DNA of 64,000 nucleotides from Kudoa neothunni (lineage: Eukaryota > Animalia > Cnidaria), in NCBI GenBank assembly GCA_964304625.1, contig OZ199840.1, positions 531,284-595,283 on the forward strand, written 5' to 3'. The notes beneath the pieces were generated by a model that was given only the letters and a program-made list of their open reading frames with translations, ran no database searches and was not told the origin of the DNA. This document shows, piece after piece, positions 3,507-51,741 of the stretch. Numbering within the stretch: the first letter of the stretch is position 1; every line of letters starts with the position of its first letter. The position numbers were made by a program, and so were the translations under genes.

Positions 3507-5038
3507 ATGAGCGTAAATTTGCAAATACCATCAAGCTGCGATACTTCGAAATTGGATGATCACTCCAGAATGTGTTTAAATGCGCCCCCCGCTTACCGAA
3601 TGTTATCAACAAGTTAAATGCCTACTTTTAAGTAGGACGTTCTCTAATTGGTTTCTTTTGTTGTAGTCGTATTATTTTGAAGCCGCTCCACCAAGGATGC
3701 CATCATTACTTCTAAACAGTGGTATATATGTCCACAAAAAACACCCCCACCTATTTGAGACAACGTAATTGAATGGGACTACTTTTTAGAATTATGATTA
3801 TGAATAGTTTTTGCAAGAAAGGTTATTTTTTCGACATCCTAATTAATATCAAACATCCATCTATAAATGGATATGTTAGGTTTTGATGATAATATTTTCT
3901 CAATTCGCCACTATCTTCTCAGCCACACTGATGTCAATTTTTATGTATTTTCTTTTGAACAATAAATGAATGTGAACAATATAAATATTTAAATTCAATA
4001 CAAATGTGTTTTCTTACACAAAAAGAGATTATAATGGAATAAAGTTTTAAAACTTCTCATAGTGACGAATTATACGAGGGATTGAAATCAAATATGTTAC
4101 TTTTGTGGACTTCACTGTACGCTATTATCGTTTTTACTGATAGTAATTAATTTTTAAAAATTCTCAATAAAGGGGCATCTATTTGGGATTAATCTTAGTT
4201 GGAATTATACTCCAAAGTTCACTGTATGATGGTTTTGATTGCGTCCCCGTTTGAAGCGGTTTTAATTATTTTTCCACACAGGAAGAAACCAGTAATCAGC
4301 ATATTCTACATAGGATTGTTGGTAAATTAAGCTCAACAATTATTTTTTGATTACATCTTAGACAGCAGCTCAATGTGGGATTTTAATGACACTTACAGCG
4401 TAATTCTATCACATAAACTACTTACTTTCGCCCAAATTATAATCCAATACATATGTAGTACATTCCAAATCGAATATCTCCCTTTTAAACTTGGAACCAC
4501 CGCCGTATATATTTATTTTTATGGAGGATATATTTCTGAGATAATTTAATCGATGAATTAGATAGTGTTGATGATTCTAGTGTTACTTACCTTCCAAGAT
4601 AAAGTAATAGTTGTTGAAAGCTGAACATTTACTTCTAATATTACTCTAGTATGACTTAATGGGTGTGATATCATACTGGGCCATTTTTGGGGTATCCGCC
4701 ATCATATTTCCAACGTTAACTGTGTTCTTCCCTGTGGAGGTAAATTACAGATTGATGCTTTTGTCGTTCTATGGGTTATATATTTTGTTTGTTATAGCCC
4801 GAAGCTTACACTCTTACAATAATTCTGACATTAGTGCTTTGTGGAGTATATTTCTTCGAATATTTACACAATTGCGTATATTATATTGTAGATGATCGTG
4901 TTGGATTTGAAGATGCTATTACGAGGAAAACGTTACCAACTTTCCCATAATGATTATGGATACAGCGCTTTAACTATCAACTTAGATGTGCTACAATGGA
5001 TAATCATGACTATATCTGAGTTGAAGCCCAAGCAATAA
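3507..5038 (+). CDS. TMBIM/lifeguard (Bax inhibitor-1 family) multi-pass membrane protein, ~11 exons
   Basis: Spliced exons give a Pro-rich N-terminus, SFCKK-VLMIIFSQF, RKKPVISIFYIGLL-TAAQCGILMTLTATFQ..LGTTA-IVLMILVLLTFQDK-YDLMG, and final exon MIVLDLKMLLRGKRYQLSHNDYGYSALTINLDVLQW, matching the lifeguard consensus (DTQ..GGRKYELSPEEYIFAAL.LYLD). Some 5' exon junctions appear to need an indel. Confidence 0.8.
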
Positions 5039-8234: not shown

Positions 8235-10657
8235 CCCTTTCGACCCGAAAAAAAAAATAAAAATTGAGAAAAAATATTGACCATTATATATCATTTCTAG
8301 ATACAACATTAAAATGGAATGCACGATCTTTGATTTAAAAGGTATTATAACTAATCAAATGACTGCATGATGCCATATGGCATCATTCGGCGACTCAAAT
8401 TGTAAGATAGTTGCCATTACGCATGTGTTTATTTTAAGCGAATATAAAAAACACTGATTTTATCAAAATAACTTAAAATTTATATATTGAACAATGAACA
8501 TTTATTTAGTATGATATGAAAAAAAACAATTTCTGCCACTATTGAGACATAGATGCAAGTTACATTTAATGCAAAAGATTCTGCAATACATGCCACATAA
8601 TTTGCACCTTTTTTTGGTTTGATCCATGTCTGGAAAATGAAAATATCCATCAAAACGAGCGTTAGAGGTTATTCCACTCTCACTAGTTTTATACCTTCTA
8701 GCGACTAAGATTGGAGTACTTAAAATTTTAGTTGAAGCAGACGGTCGACCTCTCTTTGGGATTAAGCTGACATTTTGACCAAAAAAAAGCAAGTCTTCAC
8801 TTACTTCGATGCAAAACTCTTGCAAATCCATCATTTGTTTGGTTTTTACACCAAGCAAATTACATTGCCTTCGGTAGAGAAGCCATCCATTTAGAAGGCA
8901 CAGATTTAAACACCAAAAAATATTCGGTTATACCATTTGCATGATTTGTGGTCCAAACGATACAAGACCATTAGCATGTCAAATAAATCAACACCACCCA
9001 TGTGTTTGTTGTACATTTTGACCATGTTGGGGTAGGTTATCGTTATCATATTCTTTGCTTTCTTGTCGAATCTAGGTATAGATAAGAGAGGAAACGCAGA
9101 GTAATAATAGGTTGACGATATGTTAACAATAGACCCATCAAGCCACCTTAAAACGTTAATTTTGGTCCCATTCAAATGGTAGATTCCAAACATGAAACTT
9201 CCTCGCTCTAACTTTTTCATATGTTTGTCATCCTTGAAGGGGCATTTATCCATGTGATTTTTTCTGATGGTGGAGGTTGAGAAATAACCGCGTGTTAACA
9301 ATTTGTCATGTAGACTAAAACTTGAGAAATAATTATCATAATATATATGATATGTTTTGTCGGGTAGAGTCTCGCAGAGCTTCATAAACAATATCGGATG
9401 ATTTTCTCCCAGTGCTTGTTTGAGGAATAATTGCAGGCTCACCATCAAAAAAGAAATCATGGATTATTCCACCTGCGCCGTTTCTTGTGTAAACTTTGAA
9501 ACCCCATTTTGTAGGTTTTGATGGAAGGTAACGTTTTAAATTTGATTTACCTTTGAATGGGATCATCTGTTCGTCAATCGACTGGTTGTACTCAGGTTCA
9601 ACTTTCAAACATGCTCGTCTTATTATATTAAGGACAGGCTTTATTTTATAAAATCGGTCGCATCCAGAATGGTCCGGTGATGTTACGGCGTTGTTGTTAT
9701 CGCAAAAATGAAGATACCGTAGTAGTAGCAGCCAGAACCTATCTCTGGTCATTCGCTCAACTGTAGTATTGTAGCTCAGCTTTTTCGACCAATAATTTTT
9801 GTACCTTGGCATTTTTACAATTGACATACGTATGAAAATCCCGATGAGCAAACGAATTTCTTCAACCGCTGTTTTAAATGTTGAATTTAAGAGAGAAGAA
9901 TATTTATTTGTTTCATTAGTTCTCAACTCAAATAGCTCATCAGTAAAGAACCGATTAAAATAAGAATAAGAATATGAATCCATAATGGTATTGTCAATAT
10001 CTTTAAACGATAATTCAGATTCATTTAATTGTGGCATTTCGATGAACTCATTAAAAATCCATCCTGTCTCTGAGACGGTCTCTTCTGAGTCACTTTCGTT
10101 TTCAGACAAGGAGCAGTCACTTGAAGAAATATTGTTTTCATCATTATCAGATTGATTTTCGGCATCAGACTTGTCAGGGTCTGGAAGCAGCACCAATTGT
10201 TTTACTACTCTACCTGATTTTGTTTTTTTCACGACAAAATTGGCATCCATCCCGAATCTTCACCCGATATCGTATGCGCTCCGAATGATGCCATATGGCA
10301 TCATTCGTTGTTTCATCTCCCGAACCCGCTATACATCATTATTTTTAAAATTCGATCTAATTTTCAAAATTTATTTGCTTAATAATAAATGACTATATTT
10401 TTTAGAATAAAAAATATAGATTCACTATTTTCGTAAATATCGATACAATAATCTATTATTTGTTAACACCGTTCCCGCATTTTGTTTCGTATTTTTTAAT
10501 GAATAAACAACATAAAATTCTAAATTCTAAAATTTATTTAATAAAGCATGTGTTATATTTTTATACAGCGATAGATTTAAACTATACATACAAAAATGGA
10601 ATAGATATTCCGACATCAATCTAATGATGCCATATGGCATCATTCGGGTCGAAAGGG
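8235..10657 (-). mobile_element. Full-length piggyBac transposon
   Basis: TTAA|CCCTTTCGACCCGAA ... TTCGGGTCGAAAGGG|TTAA (perfect 15-bp TIRs); internal transposase; three copies of the palindrome ATGATGCCATATGGCATCAT. Confidence 0.97.
8502..10250 (-). CDS. piggyBac transposase (PGBD-like), split by two 1-nt frameshifts
   Basis: SIDEQMIPFKG, YLPSKPTKWGFK, YYDNYFSS, YNKHMGGVDLFD (DDD triad) and Cys-rich C-terminus KRCKLC..CIKCNLHLC..CF..YH. Confidence 0.93.
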
Positions 10658-21674: not shown

Positions 21675-24600
21675 TTAGAAGCTATTGCAAATTTTGGCCA
21701 CACTGATAAATGGAACACGGGCGTTGCCTTTTTGGCCATCTGGATATGATATTTCAATGGAGTAATCACCTCCAGAGGAGGATATCAATTTTCCTTTTTT
21801 TCCCTGGTGGTCACCGGAAATAACTTCAATTTGGTCAAAGATCGAGGGAGCCACAAGCAACAACTGCCGAACATCGTTAACTGTGATCACTTCATTGTTG
21901 TTTTTGAGCAGAACAGAACAAGCACTAAGAGATTTTCTCAACACCTTGCCAACAGCATTCGGATATTTCGGATGGGTGGCAGTTAGTTTCACTTCGAAAT
22001 CTTTTCCAAGTGACATCAAGCTGGATACCGGGTTGGTGAGTACAGAACCTCCAAAGCTATTGTTGGAGTTAGGGGTGGTGTGACTATGGCTATCGGGTGA
22101 TTTTGGATTGTAGGGGTTTTTCACCTTGGAACTATTCATAGAGTTGTTATCGTTTGTTGTGCCATATTGTCGATGATGACTACTATCATCAACATTATTA
22201 AATTCATGTGAGCTTCCATAGTAGGCGCTAGTGGATGGAGTGGTGCTGCCATAGGCGGTAGGTGTGTTGGTGATAGTTTCCGAATGACGAGGTGTGGAAG
22301 GATGGTGAATGTAACTGCCAAATCCAACGTTAGAAAAACCTACCGCCGGTGTTTCAGATCCTTGTCCATGACTGGGAGTATGACAGAACGACTTGTTACC
22401 ACCGCCAACAGAAAATGGAGTATTGACCGATGAAATAGGAGTGTGAGCAGCCACCAAAGGACGCTCATCACCTTGACAAACAAACTCCGACACATTGACA
22501 GAGATGGTTTTGCTGTTGGTGTGCAACTCGATACGTGCCATCTGACCAGAACAATCACGTACAATACCATAGTATCCTTTGTATGGTCCGTGAACGATTC
22601 GAACAGTTTTACCGCGTAGATTTTTGATACTGGTGGTGTATGTTGTGATGTTGGATTGTGTGTTGAATCCAGGTCGTTGCGAGTTGGTATCATCATATTG
22701 CAACGAGGTGGTGCCGGTAATAGCAGAACTTGCTGGATTGTGGCTGGTGGCGAACCGAGGAGACATGACATACGACGGCGATCCAATGAACGGCGAGCCT
22801 ATATTTGTGCTACCACCACCGGCAATATTGACCGAATCCATTCCAGAACTCATTAGACCACTTCGGTTGACGGCATTATTTGGATTGTTTTGAGTGTTCT
22901 TTTCCACCACAAGATTTCTACTTTTACAGGTGAACATACCGCGTTCTCTTCTAATCATGGGACTGTACACAAACGCCCAATCATACACTAACATTTTAAT
23001 CTGTCCAACAACATCTTTATGTGTGTCCACTCCAACCACACGGACAGTATCTCCAATAGAGATAGGACTGTTGAATTTGTCGCGAAAAAAACCCCGCTTT
23101 GGGATGTATTTTTGAATGTTGTATATTTTGGAGGTGTTGGTTTTGCCCATTTGATTGAGAAATTCAATTGTGTCATTGTGTATCTTGGTGATACAACCGA
23201 CAGTGTTGGAATCGATACGGATAAACTCTCCCACTTGGAATTTGCCCGATGAATCCACACCTGAAAATCTGCTGGTGGATTTGTGAAGATTATACGAGAA
23301 AACTTTCATTTCGGAAAAGGAATCGTTCGAAAACACAATCACATATGGATGTTCCACACGGACAACCATCCCCACTTGACCTTGATGTTCACCAGAAATC
23401 ACTGCCACATTGTCTCCAATAGCAAAATGTTTGCGCAAATCGTCCAATAAAACATCAACAATGGGTGGTTTTTGGTTGGCCTCTTGTTTCTCCAATTGCA
23501 CTTGAATGGAATCGCCATCAACCGAAACAATACGTCCAACCGAATCCATAAGTTCACCATTCACCAACTGAACCAAATCACCAACTTTAAACGACTCGGT
23601 GGGGGTGGATTTAGGAATATCTTTCGAGATGGACAAACCACCTCCACCATTAATTTTTGAGACCGATTTGTTGAGAGTGACAGAGAACTCATTGGAATAT
23701 CTGTCATCGGTGGCTGCTTTGAATTTTTCCAATTCGTTCAACCGAGGCTCAACTCCTGACACTATTAGTGATTTGATGGGGAAACGTTTGTATAAAAGTC
23801 CCTCTTTGAAACGGTTTCCCGCAAACACATAAAATCCAGAGCTGTCTTGAGTTAGCACACCTCCCTCACGACGTACTCTATCAATGTTGAATAAAGCAGG
23901 CTCAGCTCGAAACAGCTTCCGTTCATTGTCTTTGTTGGTGTTATCGGTTGTGGTTGTTTTGTTGATTTGACGATAATCGATTCGAGGTATCAACTTCACA
24001 ACAACCGAATTTTTAACTTTATCCACCGATTCCACCTGAGCCAAATCGTTTCGATATTCACCCCGTTTGATTCGTATCCACGAATCCGGCTCCACAACCA
24101 CTGTCTCTTTGACCACCTTGAGCACTTGAGGCATCTCTGCCAGTGGAACCATCTTCTGTTTGTTGATACCGTAGGTGAAATATGAGAGACCTTGTAGAGC
24201 TGTCTTCACATGACTTTGTTTGTGAGCTTCCACATAGATAAAACCTTTTATTCCGTTCTGATAAACAGCAGACAGAATATCGATTGGATTGCCGTTCTTC
24301 TTGTGAAATAATGATTTTCTCATTAGCGCAAGAACTGCATTTGCTTCTTGACCCATTTGACATCGAACCATCCATAAACTCGGATCCCTAAATCCACAAA
24401 GTCTGGCTATTGATAAAACTCCAAACACTCACTTTATAGTTGGAAGTAAACGCTTCTTGTGAACGGAACTTGTTGATTGTTGGACAACTGATTCTTCTTC
24501 TGTATCAAGAAATTCGTCCCTTCAAATAGAACCATTTAGTTTGTAATCCACAACACTAACTATAAAAATGGACCAACCTTGATGTTGTTCCAGTCCAACG

Positions 24601-50537: not shown

Positions 50538-51741
50538 ATGAAAAATTATGAATTCGATTTGACTCCATATGATCCAGAGGAGGTGGTTATATGCCCATAT
50601 TATGATCAACATCAAATGCCTGCCAAAAGATTACCTTATCATATGAAAAAATGTCATGAGGTGGAATAATAATGCACATGTAGTTTTTTTAATTGATTCG
50701 TTCTATTGTTAGCGATATGGAGGTGATGAATATACGAATTGTCCGATGAATCGTAGACATGTAATTCGTTCCTCTGAATTGAAATCACATTTATTAAACT
50801 GCCCCAACAAAGTAAAGTTCTTACTCTCTTATTTGCCGGACTATTTGTTGTTACATCTAATTTCGATTTAGAGTGTTATTATCAAATTAACAGAAGGTAT
50901 CTACAGTTGATTTTGTGTTGGTATACATTTTTTATTAGAGATACCGGAAGATTTTTATCTACAACAATCACAAAATAACGCCAAGTTTGAGTTGAATGAA
51001 GAAGATGAATGGGGAAATGGTAATTTTTCCGTTGATAATTGTAGGTGACGCTGTAACATCGAATTTAGAATCTTCCGCCAACAACCAAAACAACAACAAT
51101 GATACATCTCTATGTTCGGCCACAGATCCAATTGAAATACATCCGTCTTTGGTGTAAGCTATTCGTTTAACCAATTTTGGTCATAGTAATAGTGTTCTAA
51201 CGAGTTGTTAGCAATTCGCCAACTGCCTATGTATACCAACTTTCACAAGAGGTTCAAACAATGCTGTTGAATGCAGCGTATAAGTATTTGCCTGATGTAC
51301 CGTTAAATTTGAGACGTATTTTTTTGATACTTGTTGGAGTTGTTTGGAGGTTGACGTTATTTTTTGTAGGTGATTTCAAATCGCTACTAAATATGTATTG
51401 CCAGATGTCTCGCGTCAAAAGTCCCACCTATTTTGAAGTGAGCGACCCAAAAAAACGCTTTGGAAACTACGCTAGCAAATGTATCGCGTTCAATCGCAAT
51501 TTCTACAGTTCTGCAAGGTGCACCACGTTAATGCAGTCGCAACAAGATTCTGCAAAATGGGCGCTATTATTTGCCTTCATCAAAGCCGGTAGTAGTTTGA
51601 TGAGTAGAAATCAATTATAAACCAGTTACTTTAATAGCTCCAAAGGACATCTACGATGAATTTAATAAATTAGAAACAGCCAATCAAACATCTAACAAAT
51701 CAACTGAAGTTGGTGGGCCAGCGTTTAAAACAGCCCAATAA
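50538..51741 (+). CDS. GTSF1: GTSF1/Asterix-like double CHHC zinc-finger protein with C-terminal dsRBD (287 aa, 8 exons)
   Basis: Exons 50538-50660, 50713-50811, 50872-50896, 50939-51019, 51045-51153, 51212-51315, 51370-51588, 51638-51741 total 864 nt and are open. Motifs: CPYYDQH..RLPYHMKKC, CPMNRRH..ELKSHLLNC, EEDEW, DFKSLLNMYCQ..SPTY..QDSAKWAL. Confidence 0.9.

Follow-up and report, generated by a model that had tools for sequence, protein, structure and literature searches.

GTSF1 is the essential activator of slicing by PIWI proteins and accelerates this reaction (PMC9385479), and how such a tiny protein with weak RNA binding recognizes target-engaged PIWI is still being worked out. The described homologues are smaller than 20 kDa and have two CHHC zinc fingers only, and PIWI is bound by a central region with critical aromatic residues, which in fly Asterix comprises residues 83–115 (review PMC9539491). 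Nematodes have gone another way: the GTSF-1 of Caenorhabditis elegans binds RRF-3, an RNA-dependent RNA polymerase (RdRP), and is without the positively charged region by which mouse GTSF1 binds RNA, and it was proposed in 2026 that GTSF1-like proteins may serve RdRPs also in non-nematode lineages, with cnidarians being named (PMC13650160). We analyzed a gene at positions 50538–51741 (+) of a 64,000-nucleotide stretch of contig OZ199840.1 (the window), for which a preliminary description had proposed a fusion of GTSF1 with a double-stranded RNA-binding domain (dsRBD), and the statement made there that known GTSF1 proteins are small and without a dsRBD agrees with the cited review. In our view, it is very likely that this is one gene that combines the GTSF1 fingers with a dsRBD fold. 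The functional reading to which we incline, with considerable reserve, is that the product is a GTSF1/Asterix member of 287 amino acids (aa) with one C-terminal dsRBD, which would act as a PIWI cofactor with the dsRBD as an added anchor.

The joined exons (Table 1) give an 864-nucleotide (nt) frame of 287 codons and one terminal TAA, as determined by three-frame translation and a local script. The surrounding DNA is AT-rich, with about 30% G+C; the G+C fraction is 0.33–0.43 in the exons, except for exon 3 (0.24), and 0.26–0.33 in the introns. Introns 1–7 have lengths of 52, 60, 42, 25, 58, 54, and 49 nt, and all seven begin with GT and end in TAG. The eight GT–AG exons of the preliminary description could thus be reproduced, with one detail corrected: with a stronger-looking exon 6 donor at 51284, the join would have 832 nt (own count) and the frame is lost, and the 287-aa model uses the weaker site at 51316, where gac is followed by GTATTT. 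A ciliate-type genetic code was considered as the cause of the tiny introns and rejected, as finger 1 and finger 2 are not in the same frame and an orthologous locus confirms the introns. All database and fold queries were made with single exons, and the 287-aa join was used only for frame counting and for the pairwise alignment with this orthologue.

The orthologous locus lies on L001, a 5.2-kb genomic contig of another species, from which a 98-aa fragment (P0002) with 50% identity is known. L001 contains the same eight exons with every intron at the same position and in the same phase, and its uninterrupted frame encodes 277 aa with 46% identity. Exons 2, 3, 6, and 7 are equal in length in both loci (99, 25, 104, and 219 nt), and the 25-nt exon 3 is kept with identical phase, encoding GVIKKLTE. 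Intron 4, with 25 nt, corresponds to an intron of 35 nt that interrupts the same codon position in L001, and the start of exon 8, an exon without a Pfam match, is conserved in the same phase (APKHLIDKFESFK). The introns of L001 are 30–45 nt long, and together with the 25–60-nt introns of the window gene, 14 of 14 end in TAG. Nucleotide identity between the loci is 0.66–0.72 in exons 1–4, 6, and 7, compared with 0.46–0.60 in the introns. Exon 5, at 51%, does not exceed the introns and differs in length (109 vs. 85 nt), with intron position and phase being kept, and exon 6 is nearly neutral, with proportions of nonsynonymous (pN) and synonymous (pS) differences of 0.49 and 0.52. Outside the gene, a synteny comparison of L001 with the window gave noise-level matches only. 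An orthologous locus with the same eight exons and identical phases confirms, at the level of genomic sequence, that the predicted gene is real and not a product of chance. The weak exon 6 donor at 51316 is likewise supported, since exon 6 of L001 also has 104 nt and intron 6 of L001 contains in-frame stops.

Table 1. Positions of the exons in the window, of their counterparts on contig L001, and of two further features of the window.
Feature	Window position	Strand	L001 position	Content
Exon 1	50538–50660	+	3688–3822	First CHHC zinc finger (C19-H25-H35-C39), with the start codon
Exon 2	50713–50811	+	3855–3953	Second CHHC zinc finger, YGG motif ahead of the finger
Exon 3	50872–50896	+	3999–4023	25-nt micro-exon, SVIIKLTE
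Exon 4	50939–51019	+	4058–4141	Central aromatic/acidic region: F88, Y89, F99, EEDEW (residues 103–107)
Exon 5	51045–51153	+	4177–4261	Asn-rich low-complexity linker; conserved HPSLV at its end; preceded by 25-nt intron
Exon 6	51212–51315	+	4297–4400	Rapidly evolving low-complexity linker, length conserved (104 nt)
Exon 7	51370–51588	+	4436–4654	Predicted dsRBD fold, alpha1-beta1-beta2-beta3-alpha2; 72 in-frame residues; LMQSQ at KKxAK position
Exon 8	51638–51741	+	4685–4767	Short C-terminal tail (APKDIYDEFNKLE...) and TAA stop
SPT5	21675–24428	-		Single uninterrupted 917-aa open reading frame
piggyBac-type transposase (DDE_Tnp_1_7)	8502–10250	-		Two overlapping open reading frames, 304 and 184 aa

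Some splicing alternatives also keep the frame. When exon 3 is skipped via an alternative acceptor at 50940/50941, two bases downstream, an in-frame product of 278 aa results, and the frame stays open as well when intron 6 is retained (local script); exon 3 use and intron 6 splicing are therefore not fixed by the sequence of the window alone. Retention of the 25-nt intron 4 (region 51020–51047) ends the frame after about 116 aa, and the product would match a canonical short GTSF1 in size and layout. This form could be a second isoform, or it could be meaningless, since AT-rich introns nearly always carry stops. The early stop at the size of a canonical GTSF1 would also be expected from a gene-model artefact, in which a short GTSF1 (exons 1–4 with retained intron 4) lies beside a separate dsRBD protein that begins with an ATG at 51261. 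An ATG-initiated 119-aa open reading frame (ORF) indeed covers exon 7, exons 5 and 6 are nearly neutral in their evolution, and the gene model was derived from genomic sequence. However, L001 conserves the phases of all seven introns as well as the lengths of exons 6 and 7, its joined exons form an open frame with stops in intron 6, and its exon 6 offers no equivalent upstream ATG for the exon 7 ORF. Furthermore, the gaps between the exons are just 25–60 nt, and six Hydra-type proteins contain both domains in a single ORF, so that we hold two separate genes to be quite improbable and continue with the single gene.

Both fingers, which are arranged in tandem near the N-terminus, have the spacing C-x5-H-x9-H-x3-C that had been claimed for them, and both exceed the cut-off of 21.1 bits for Pfam PF05253 (zf-U11-48K), with 27.3 bits for exon 1 and 24.9 bits for exon 2. 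When exon 1 is compared with all solved structures, the best match is to finger 1 of mouse GTSF1 (6x46; E 3.6e-10), and basic residues are present in finger 1 (AKRLPYHMKKC). The finger part of exon 1 shares 77% identity with L001 (pN 0.15, pS 0.68), and exon 2 shares 70% (finger 2: pN 0.24, pS 0.83). A CHHC protein of the U11/U12-48K or TRMT1L type, with a role in the minor spliceosome or in tRNA modification, would account for the name of the Pfam family and for the match of the solved U11/U12-48K finger to exon 1 (E 1e-4), but GTSF1 finger 1 matches better by six orders of magnitude, the fingers are two, tandem, and N-terminal, and neither a methyltransferase region nor a further part of U11-48K was detected, which makes such an assignment highly improbable. 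The EEDEW motif and the Asn-rich linker of the preliminary description are both present. In L001, the exon 4 region reads EFYY...EEEEW, and F88, Y89, F99, and W107 within the acidic stretch are largely conserved there; the Hydra-type proteins have DNW(E/D)DE at the acidic Trp motif. By its position, exon 4 appears to correspond to the PIWI-binding region of fly and mouse GTSF1, and it may bind PIWI as well.

Exon 7 aligns with positions 2–63 of the 66 positions of the Pfam dsrm profile (PF00035), with a score of 17.4 bits (E 0.0067) that stays below the gathering cut-off of 23 bits. Homologues exceed this cut-off (P0006 with 29.6 bits, P0007 with 40.1 bits). With exon 7 as the query, a full phmmer/HMMER search found eight matches in 1.84 billion representative proteins, including the orthologue fragment P0002. 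The best relatives are genuine dsrm domains: five of the eight score as Pfam dsrm, among them a plant DRB-like protein and tilapia proteins that have 6–8 dsrm repeats and, in one case, a kinase domain as well. Two metagenomic proteins, P0004 (861 aa) and P0008 (585 aa), were matched by exon 7 in eight and six separate stretches, respectively; a Pfam scan finds no dsrm in them, and they could consist of strongly diverged dsRBD-like repeats in arrays. For modeling, we used an alignment of 12 rows that included three canonical dsRBDs (A1), which served as input for AlphaFold2 and for a profile. The model of exon 7 has a predicted local distance difference test score (pLDDT) of 88.7, with helices at residues 2–12 and 53–71 and strands at 19–23, 34–39, and 42–45. 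In a Foldseek search of the PDB, the 50 matches listed were all dsRBD-bearing entries, with a query-normalized template modeling (TM) score of up to 0.78, and include HYL1, DRB2/3/4, RNase III, R2D2, Staufen, Loquacious, PACT, TRBP, and DUS2. The A1 profile strongly matches PKR, DRB4, and TRBP, a result that is partly circular, as three canonical dsRBDs are inside the profile. The predicted dsRBD fold, which had been proposed from the pattern of secondary structure elements, is thus borne out by the model and by the sequence neighbors, if not by the Pfam score, and we regard the fold assignment as sound despite this sub-threshold value. Constraint on exon 7 relative to L001 (pN 0.28, with a saturated pS of 0.83) is like that on finger 2; the domain is conserved and therefore has some function.

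The combination of both domains is found in further proteins. Two are from Hydra vulgaris, LOC100213388 with 513 aa and LOC136072005 with 431 aa; they are annotated as "uncharacterized protein" and already have PF05253 and PF00035 recorded in precomputed Pfam, and the unnamed relatives P0006, P0016, P0017, and P0020 also possess the two domains. P0006, an ORF of 382 aa that takes up a contig of 1242 nt, encodes two CHHC fingers, an acidic Trp motif, and the dsrm domain, and the three other unnamed relatives have 515–538 aa and lie on contigs of 1.8–1.9 kb. Hence, both domains are joined within one ORF in six Hydra-type proteins, of which four are encoded on contigs of 1.2–1.9 kb that barely exceed this ORF. 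The window exons are collinear with Hydra P0019, with exon 1 corresponding to residues 37–64 and exon 7 to residues 270–332 (E 1e-6). For exon 6, the sole linker exon compared, BLASTP detected no similarity to P0019, and a resemblance of LNAAYKYL to LNAIKAAYPL that could be seen by eye between these two is therefore unsupported. The order of elements is common to all: two CHHC fingers with YGG between them, the acidic Trp motif, and then one dsRBD. The window protein and the Hydra-type proteins have in common the YGG that lies between the fingers and, within the dsRBD, SKC and AKWALL; as these are not general features of dsRBDs or of GTSF1, a single origin of the fusion is favored over two.

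Identity between the window protein and the Hydra-type proteins is about 30–36% within the domains. The latter are longer, and they differ from the window protein by a conserved region, basic and helical, that precedes the dsRBD and, in most of them, by a Q-rich tail with RG repeats. An AlphaFold model of Hydra P0018 shows, in this order, the finger module, a disordered acidic stretch, the helical basic region, the dsRBD, one more helix, and a disordered tail. In P0016–P0020, RG repeats (GRGRGRG..MKL) follow the Q-rich tail at the C-terminus, and the window protein has no such repeats. RG repeats are typical Tudor-binding arginine-methylation sites in the N-termini of PIWI proteins. As judged from these alignments, the window protein is a stripped-down version of the Hydra-type layout, without basic region and RG tail, and it belongs with LOC100213388 and LOC136072005 to what appears to be a small unnamed family. 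The suggestion that the architecture may be shared with related lineages has thereby come true. Outside the Hydra-type group, two-domain proteins were found neither by the exon 7 scan nor by a profile search with hydrozoan proteins and window exon rows (A2) nor in the ESM Atlas, with the limited reach that these searches have; in A2, MAFFT placed the exon 2 rows on finger 1, which is a small flaw, and the ESM Atlas search with P0018 returned only arthropod CHHC clusters with scores below 0.8 and no two-domain cluster. A description of a GTSF1 with a dsRBD, LOC100213388 included, was not found in the literature searched. The expectation that the architecture is undescribed therefore holds for publications, and novelty is reduced, because both Pfam domains already stand on public, unnamed Hydra proteins.

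Canonical dsRBDs contact RNA by a Glu in alpha1, by GPxH in loop 2, and by KKxAK at the start of alpha2, motif definitions that we took from general knowledge. In the A1 alignment, exon 7 has none of the three signatures (LLNMYCQ, SDPKKRF, TLMQSQQ): Met replaces the Glu in alpha1, loop 2 has no His, and LMQSQ stands in place of KKxAK. The Hydra-type proteins conform only to the third motif, with KKEAK or KKDAK, and L001 has LKEAH at this position. Throughout the GTSF1-dsRBD family, the helix-1 Glu is absent, with M, I, or V-type residues instead, and the loop-2 His is absent except for one in L001. Since the Hydra-type proteins keep KK(E/D)AK and L001 keeps LKEAH, the loss of KKxAK is recent and lineage-specific and not a family property. 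Canonical duplex binding is thus likely for the Hydra-type dsRBD and doubtful for the exon 7 domain, as far as motifs can tell.

The preliminary description had taken LMQSQ as a sign of a protein-interaction type of dsRBD, and the replacement of the basic motif has indeed been found. A purely protein-binding domain of type B, which would dimerize the cofactor or dock on a partner without RNA contact, has some probability, although we would not give it preference. Beside the loss of all KKxAK lysines, the family-wide absence of the alpha1 Glu, and the missing loop-2 His, it can refer to the Foldseek matches, which include the dsRBD3 of Loquacious (ranks 32–33) and a PACT D3 homodimer (rank 39); these two, the dsRBD3 of TRBP, and the dsRBD5 of Staufen are what we take to be type-B examples. 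On the other hand, the RNA-binding HYL1, DRB2/3/4, and RNase III rank above the type-B domains, and the exon 7 domain has a net charge of about +7 (own count) with PKKR in loop 2, at the position of the second RNA-contact region. The retention of KKxAK in the Hydra-type proteins, and of a part of it in L001, suggests moreover that the ancestral role was probably RNA binding. As the domain is still strongly basic, a purely protein-binding role is not established.

The genome (40.26 Mb, 4 contigs) was searched for domains in six frames. Two PIWI-clade genes are present, L005 (C3:4676539-4680411) and L006/L010 (C1:896678-901827). L005 matches solved PIWI proteins with E 3e-185 and AGO2 with 1e-51, and L006 matches solved PIWI proteins with E 5e-64 and AGO with 1e-21; both show the catalytic DDH positions in GIDV, RDGV, and YAHK. 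In the second PIWI gene, a 51-nt in-frame intron splits the PAPCQ/YAHK motif. PAZ is confined to these two genes. The six-frame search gave no RdRP (PF05183), no RNase III domains (PF00636, PF14622), and no AGO-clade gene, both Argonaute-family genes being of the PIWI clade, and these negatives are weak, given the strong divergence of the genome and its exons of roughly 100 nt. If the absences are real, the organism runs a PIWI-only small-RNA system. In a Myxobolus transcriptome study, Dicer and AGO2 were reported (PMC10454682), neither of which was detected in this genome. Pfam dsrm was not found at E <= 0.001 anywhere in the genome, and the A1 profile identified only the locus described here, exon 7 thus being single-copy. 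A second gene with tandem CHHC fingers exists at C2:1569378-1569440 (L003 1483-1700; MDQLVYCPFDKNHKIKGKRITAHITKC... then ...VCPYHALHYVSPENYAAHIFEC), near which the A1 profile found no dsRBD of the GTSF1-dsRBD type, and it is probably a short canonical GTSF1 paralogue.

The Dicer/Hen1-type link that had been suggested for the fusion has no support in this genome, with the weakness of the negatives noted above. More generally, the partner could be an RdRP or Dicer machine instead of PIWI, with the dsRBD holding the dsRNA product: nematode GTSF-1 binds RRF-3, a link of GTSF1-like proteins to RdRPs has been proposed for other lineages including cnidarians (PMC13650160), a dsRBD would suit a dsRNA pathway, and the idea could hold for the Hydra-type proteins with their intact KKxAK. 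In the organism analyzed here, it is opposed by the absence, weak as negative evidence, of any detected RdRP, RNase III, or PAZ beyond the two PIWI genes, by the PIWI clade membership of both Argonaute-family genes, and by the conserved central aromatic/acidic region. We therefore consider this partner unlikely overall; for the Hydra-type proteins, it is a rival to be taken seriously, and it is less probable for the window protein, with neither RdRP nor Dicer detected in this genome.

We thus return to the PIWI cofactor with an added anchor. In this reading, the layout is that of two tandem CHHC fingers, followed by the aromatic/acidic central region, a disordered linker, and the dsRBD. The protein would work as GTSF1 does, namely as a cofactor for the two slicer-type PIWI proteins of the organism, with the basic residues of finger 1 contacting RNA and the central aromatic region docking onto PIWI, and the dsRBD would be an extra anchor that raises the affinity of the cofactor for the assembly of PIWI, guide, and target. 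Gene structure, the two folds, conservation, and the existence of PIWI genes are shown by the data, whereas we infer PIWI binding, RNA binding of any kind, and the role of the dsRBD. In the Hydra-type proteins, the intact KKxAK suggests contact with an A-form RNA duplex, for example the helix of PIWI-interacting RNA (piRNA) and target or a structured RNA. In the window protein, three lysines have been lost while the fold is under purifying selection and strongly basic, and the anchor is therefore probably non-canonical, with either a weaker RNA contact via the basic beta1–beta2 loop or a protein contact.

Several points weigh against this proposal. Family membership does not fix the partner, because nematode GTSF-1 serves an RdRP and not PIWI (PMC13650160). 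The main PIWI cofactor could be the dsRBD-less protein of L003. Exon 7 has a sub-threshold dsrm score and lacks all three canonical RNA-contact signatures, and the support for the use of exon 3, for intron 4 with its 25 nt, and for the weak intron 6 donor comes only from the comparison with L001. Finally, the sensitivity of the genome search is doubtful, because the same kind of search gave no dsrm whatever. A more far-reaching idea is tentative: GTSF1-dsRBD proteins might form a distinct, hitherto undescribed class of PIWI cofactors that is conserved between Hydra-type animals and this very divergent lineage, in which the dsRBD would license slicing by reading an RNA helix, either that of piRNA and target or another one. 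In this organism, it would work within a PIWI-only system, with no Dicer, AGO, or RdRP detected and this dsRBD-like domain being the only one detected in the genome.

Some other features were noted. The window encodes SPT5 in a 43% G+C island, by a gene that is intronless, whereas other genes in this genome have many tiny introns. Its identity to SPT5 of the named animals listed is only 26–34%, which indicates a very divergent, fast-evolving lineage, and 55% to that of an unnamed relative. The two ORFs of the piggyBac-type transposase cover profile positions 3–162 and 194–338, and this copy is frameshifted or intron-bearing. At about position 1739 of L008 (C3 near 7756100), the Cys pattern CPSDCSADSCKPECSFHCC resembles a minicollagen-type Cys-rich domain, which is suggestive of a cnidarian or myxozoan origin.

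A natural GTSF1 to which an RNA-duplex-binding fold has been added, and which two distant lineages have conserved under purifying selection, is a ready-made experiment. The addition suggests a benefit of extra anchoring, be it to RNA or to a partner. Within the family, the dsRBD exists in a canonical form in Hydra, where KKxAK is intact, and in a degenerate form in this genome, and as PIWI biology and genetics are established in Hydra, a direct test of the idea is possible there. A dsRBD-bearing GTSF1 is also an obvious candidate for the RdRP service proposed outside nematodes.

In comparison with known systems, the window protein shares with mouse GTSF1, fly Asterix, and silkworm Gtsf1 the two tandem N-terminal CHHC fingers with identical spacing, the basic finger 1, the central aromatic/acidic region at about residues 83–110, and the presence of PIWI-clade genes in the genome, and it differs from these proteins, which are without a further folded domain (PMC9539491), by its larger size and its C-terminal dsRBD. 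Like the window protein, C. elegans GTSF-1 belongs to the GTSF1 family, and its partner has been rewired, so that the finger module can serve more than one small-RNA machine; unlike the window protein, it binds RRF-3 and has no dsRBD, and no RdRP was detected in the genome analyzed here. TRBP, PACT, Loquacious, R2D2, and HYL1/DRB have two or three dsRBDs, Dicer and AGO-clade partners, and no CHHC fingers, but they share the fold of exon 7, and in the window protein this dsRBD would likewise attach to an effector complex of the Argonaute family.

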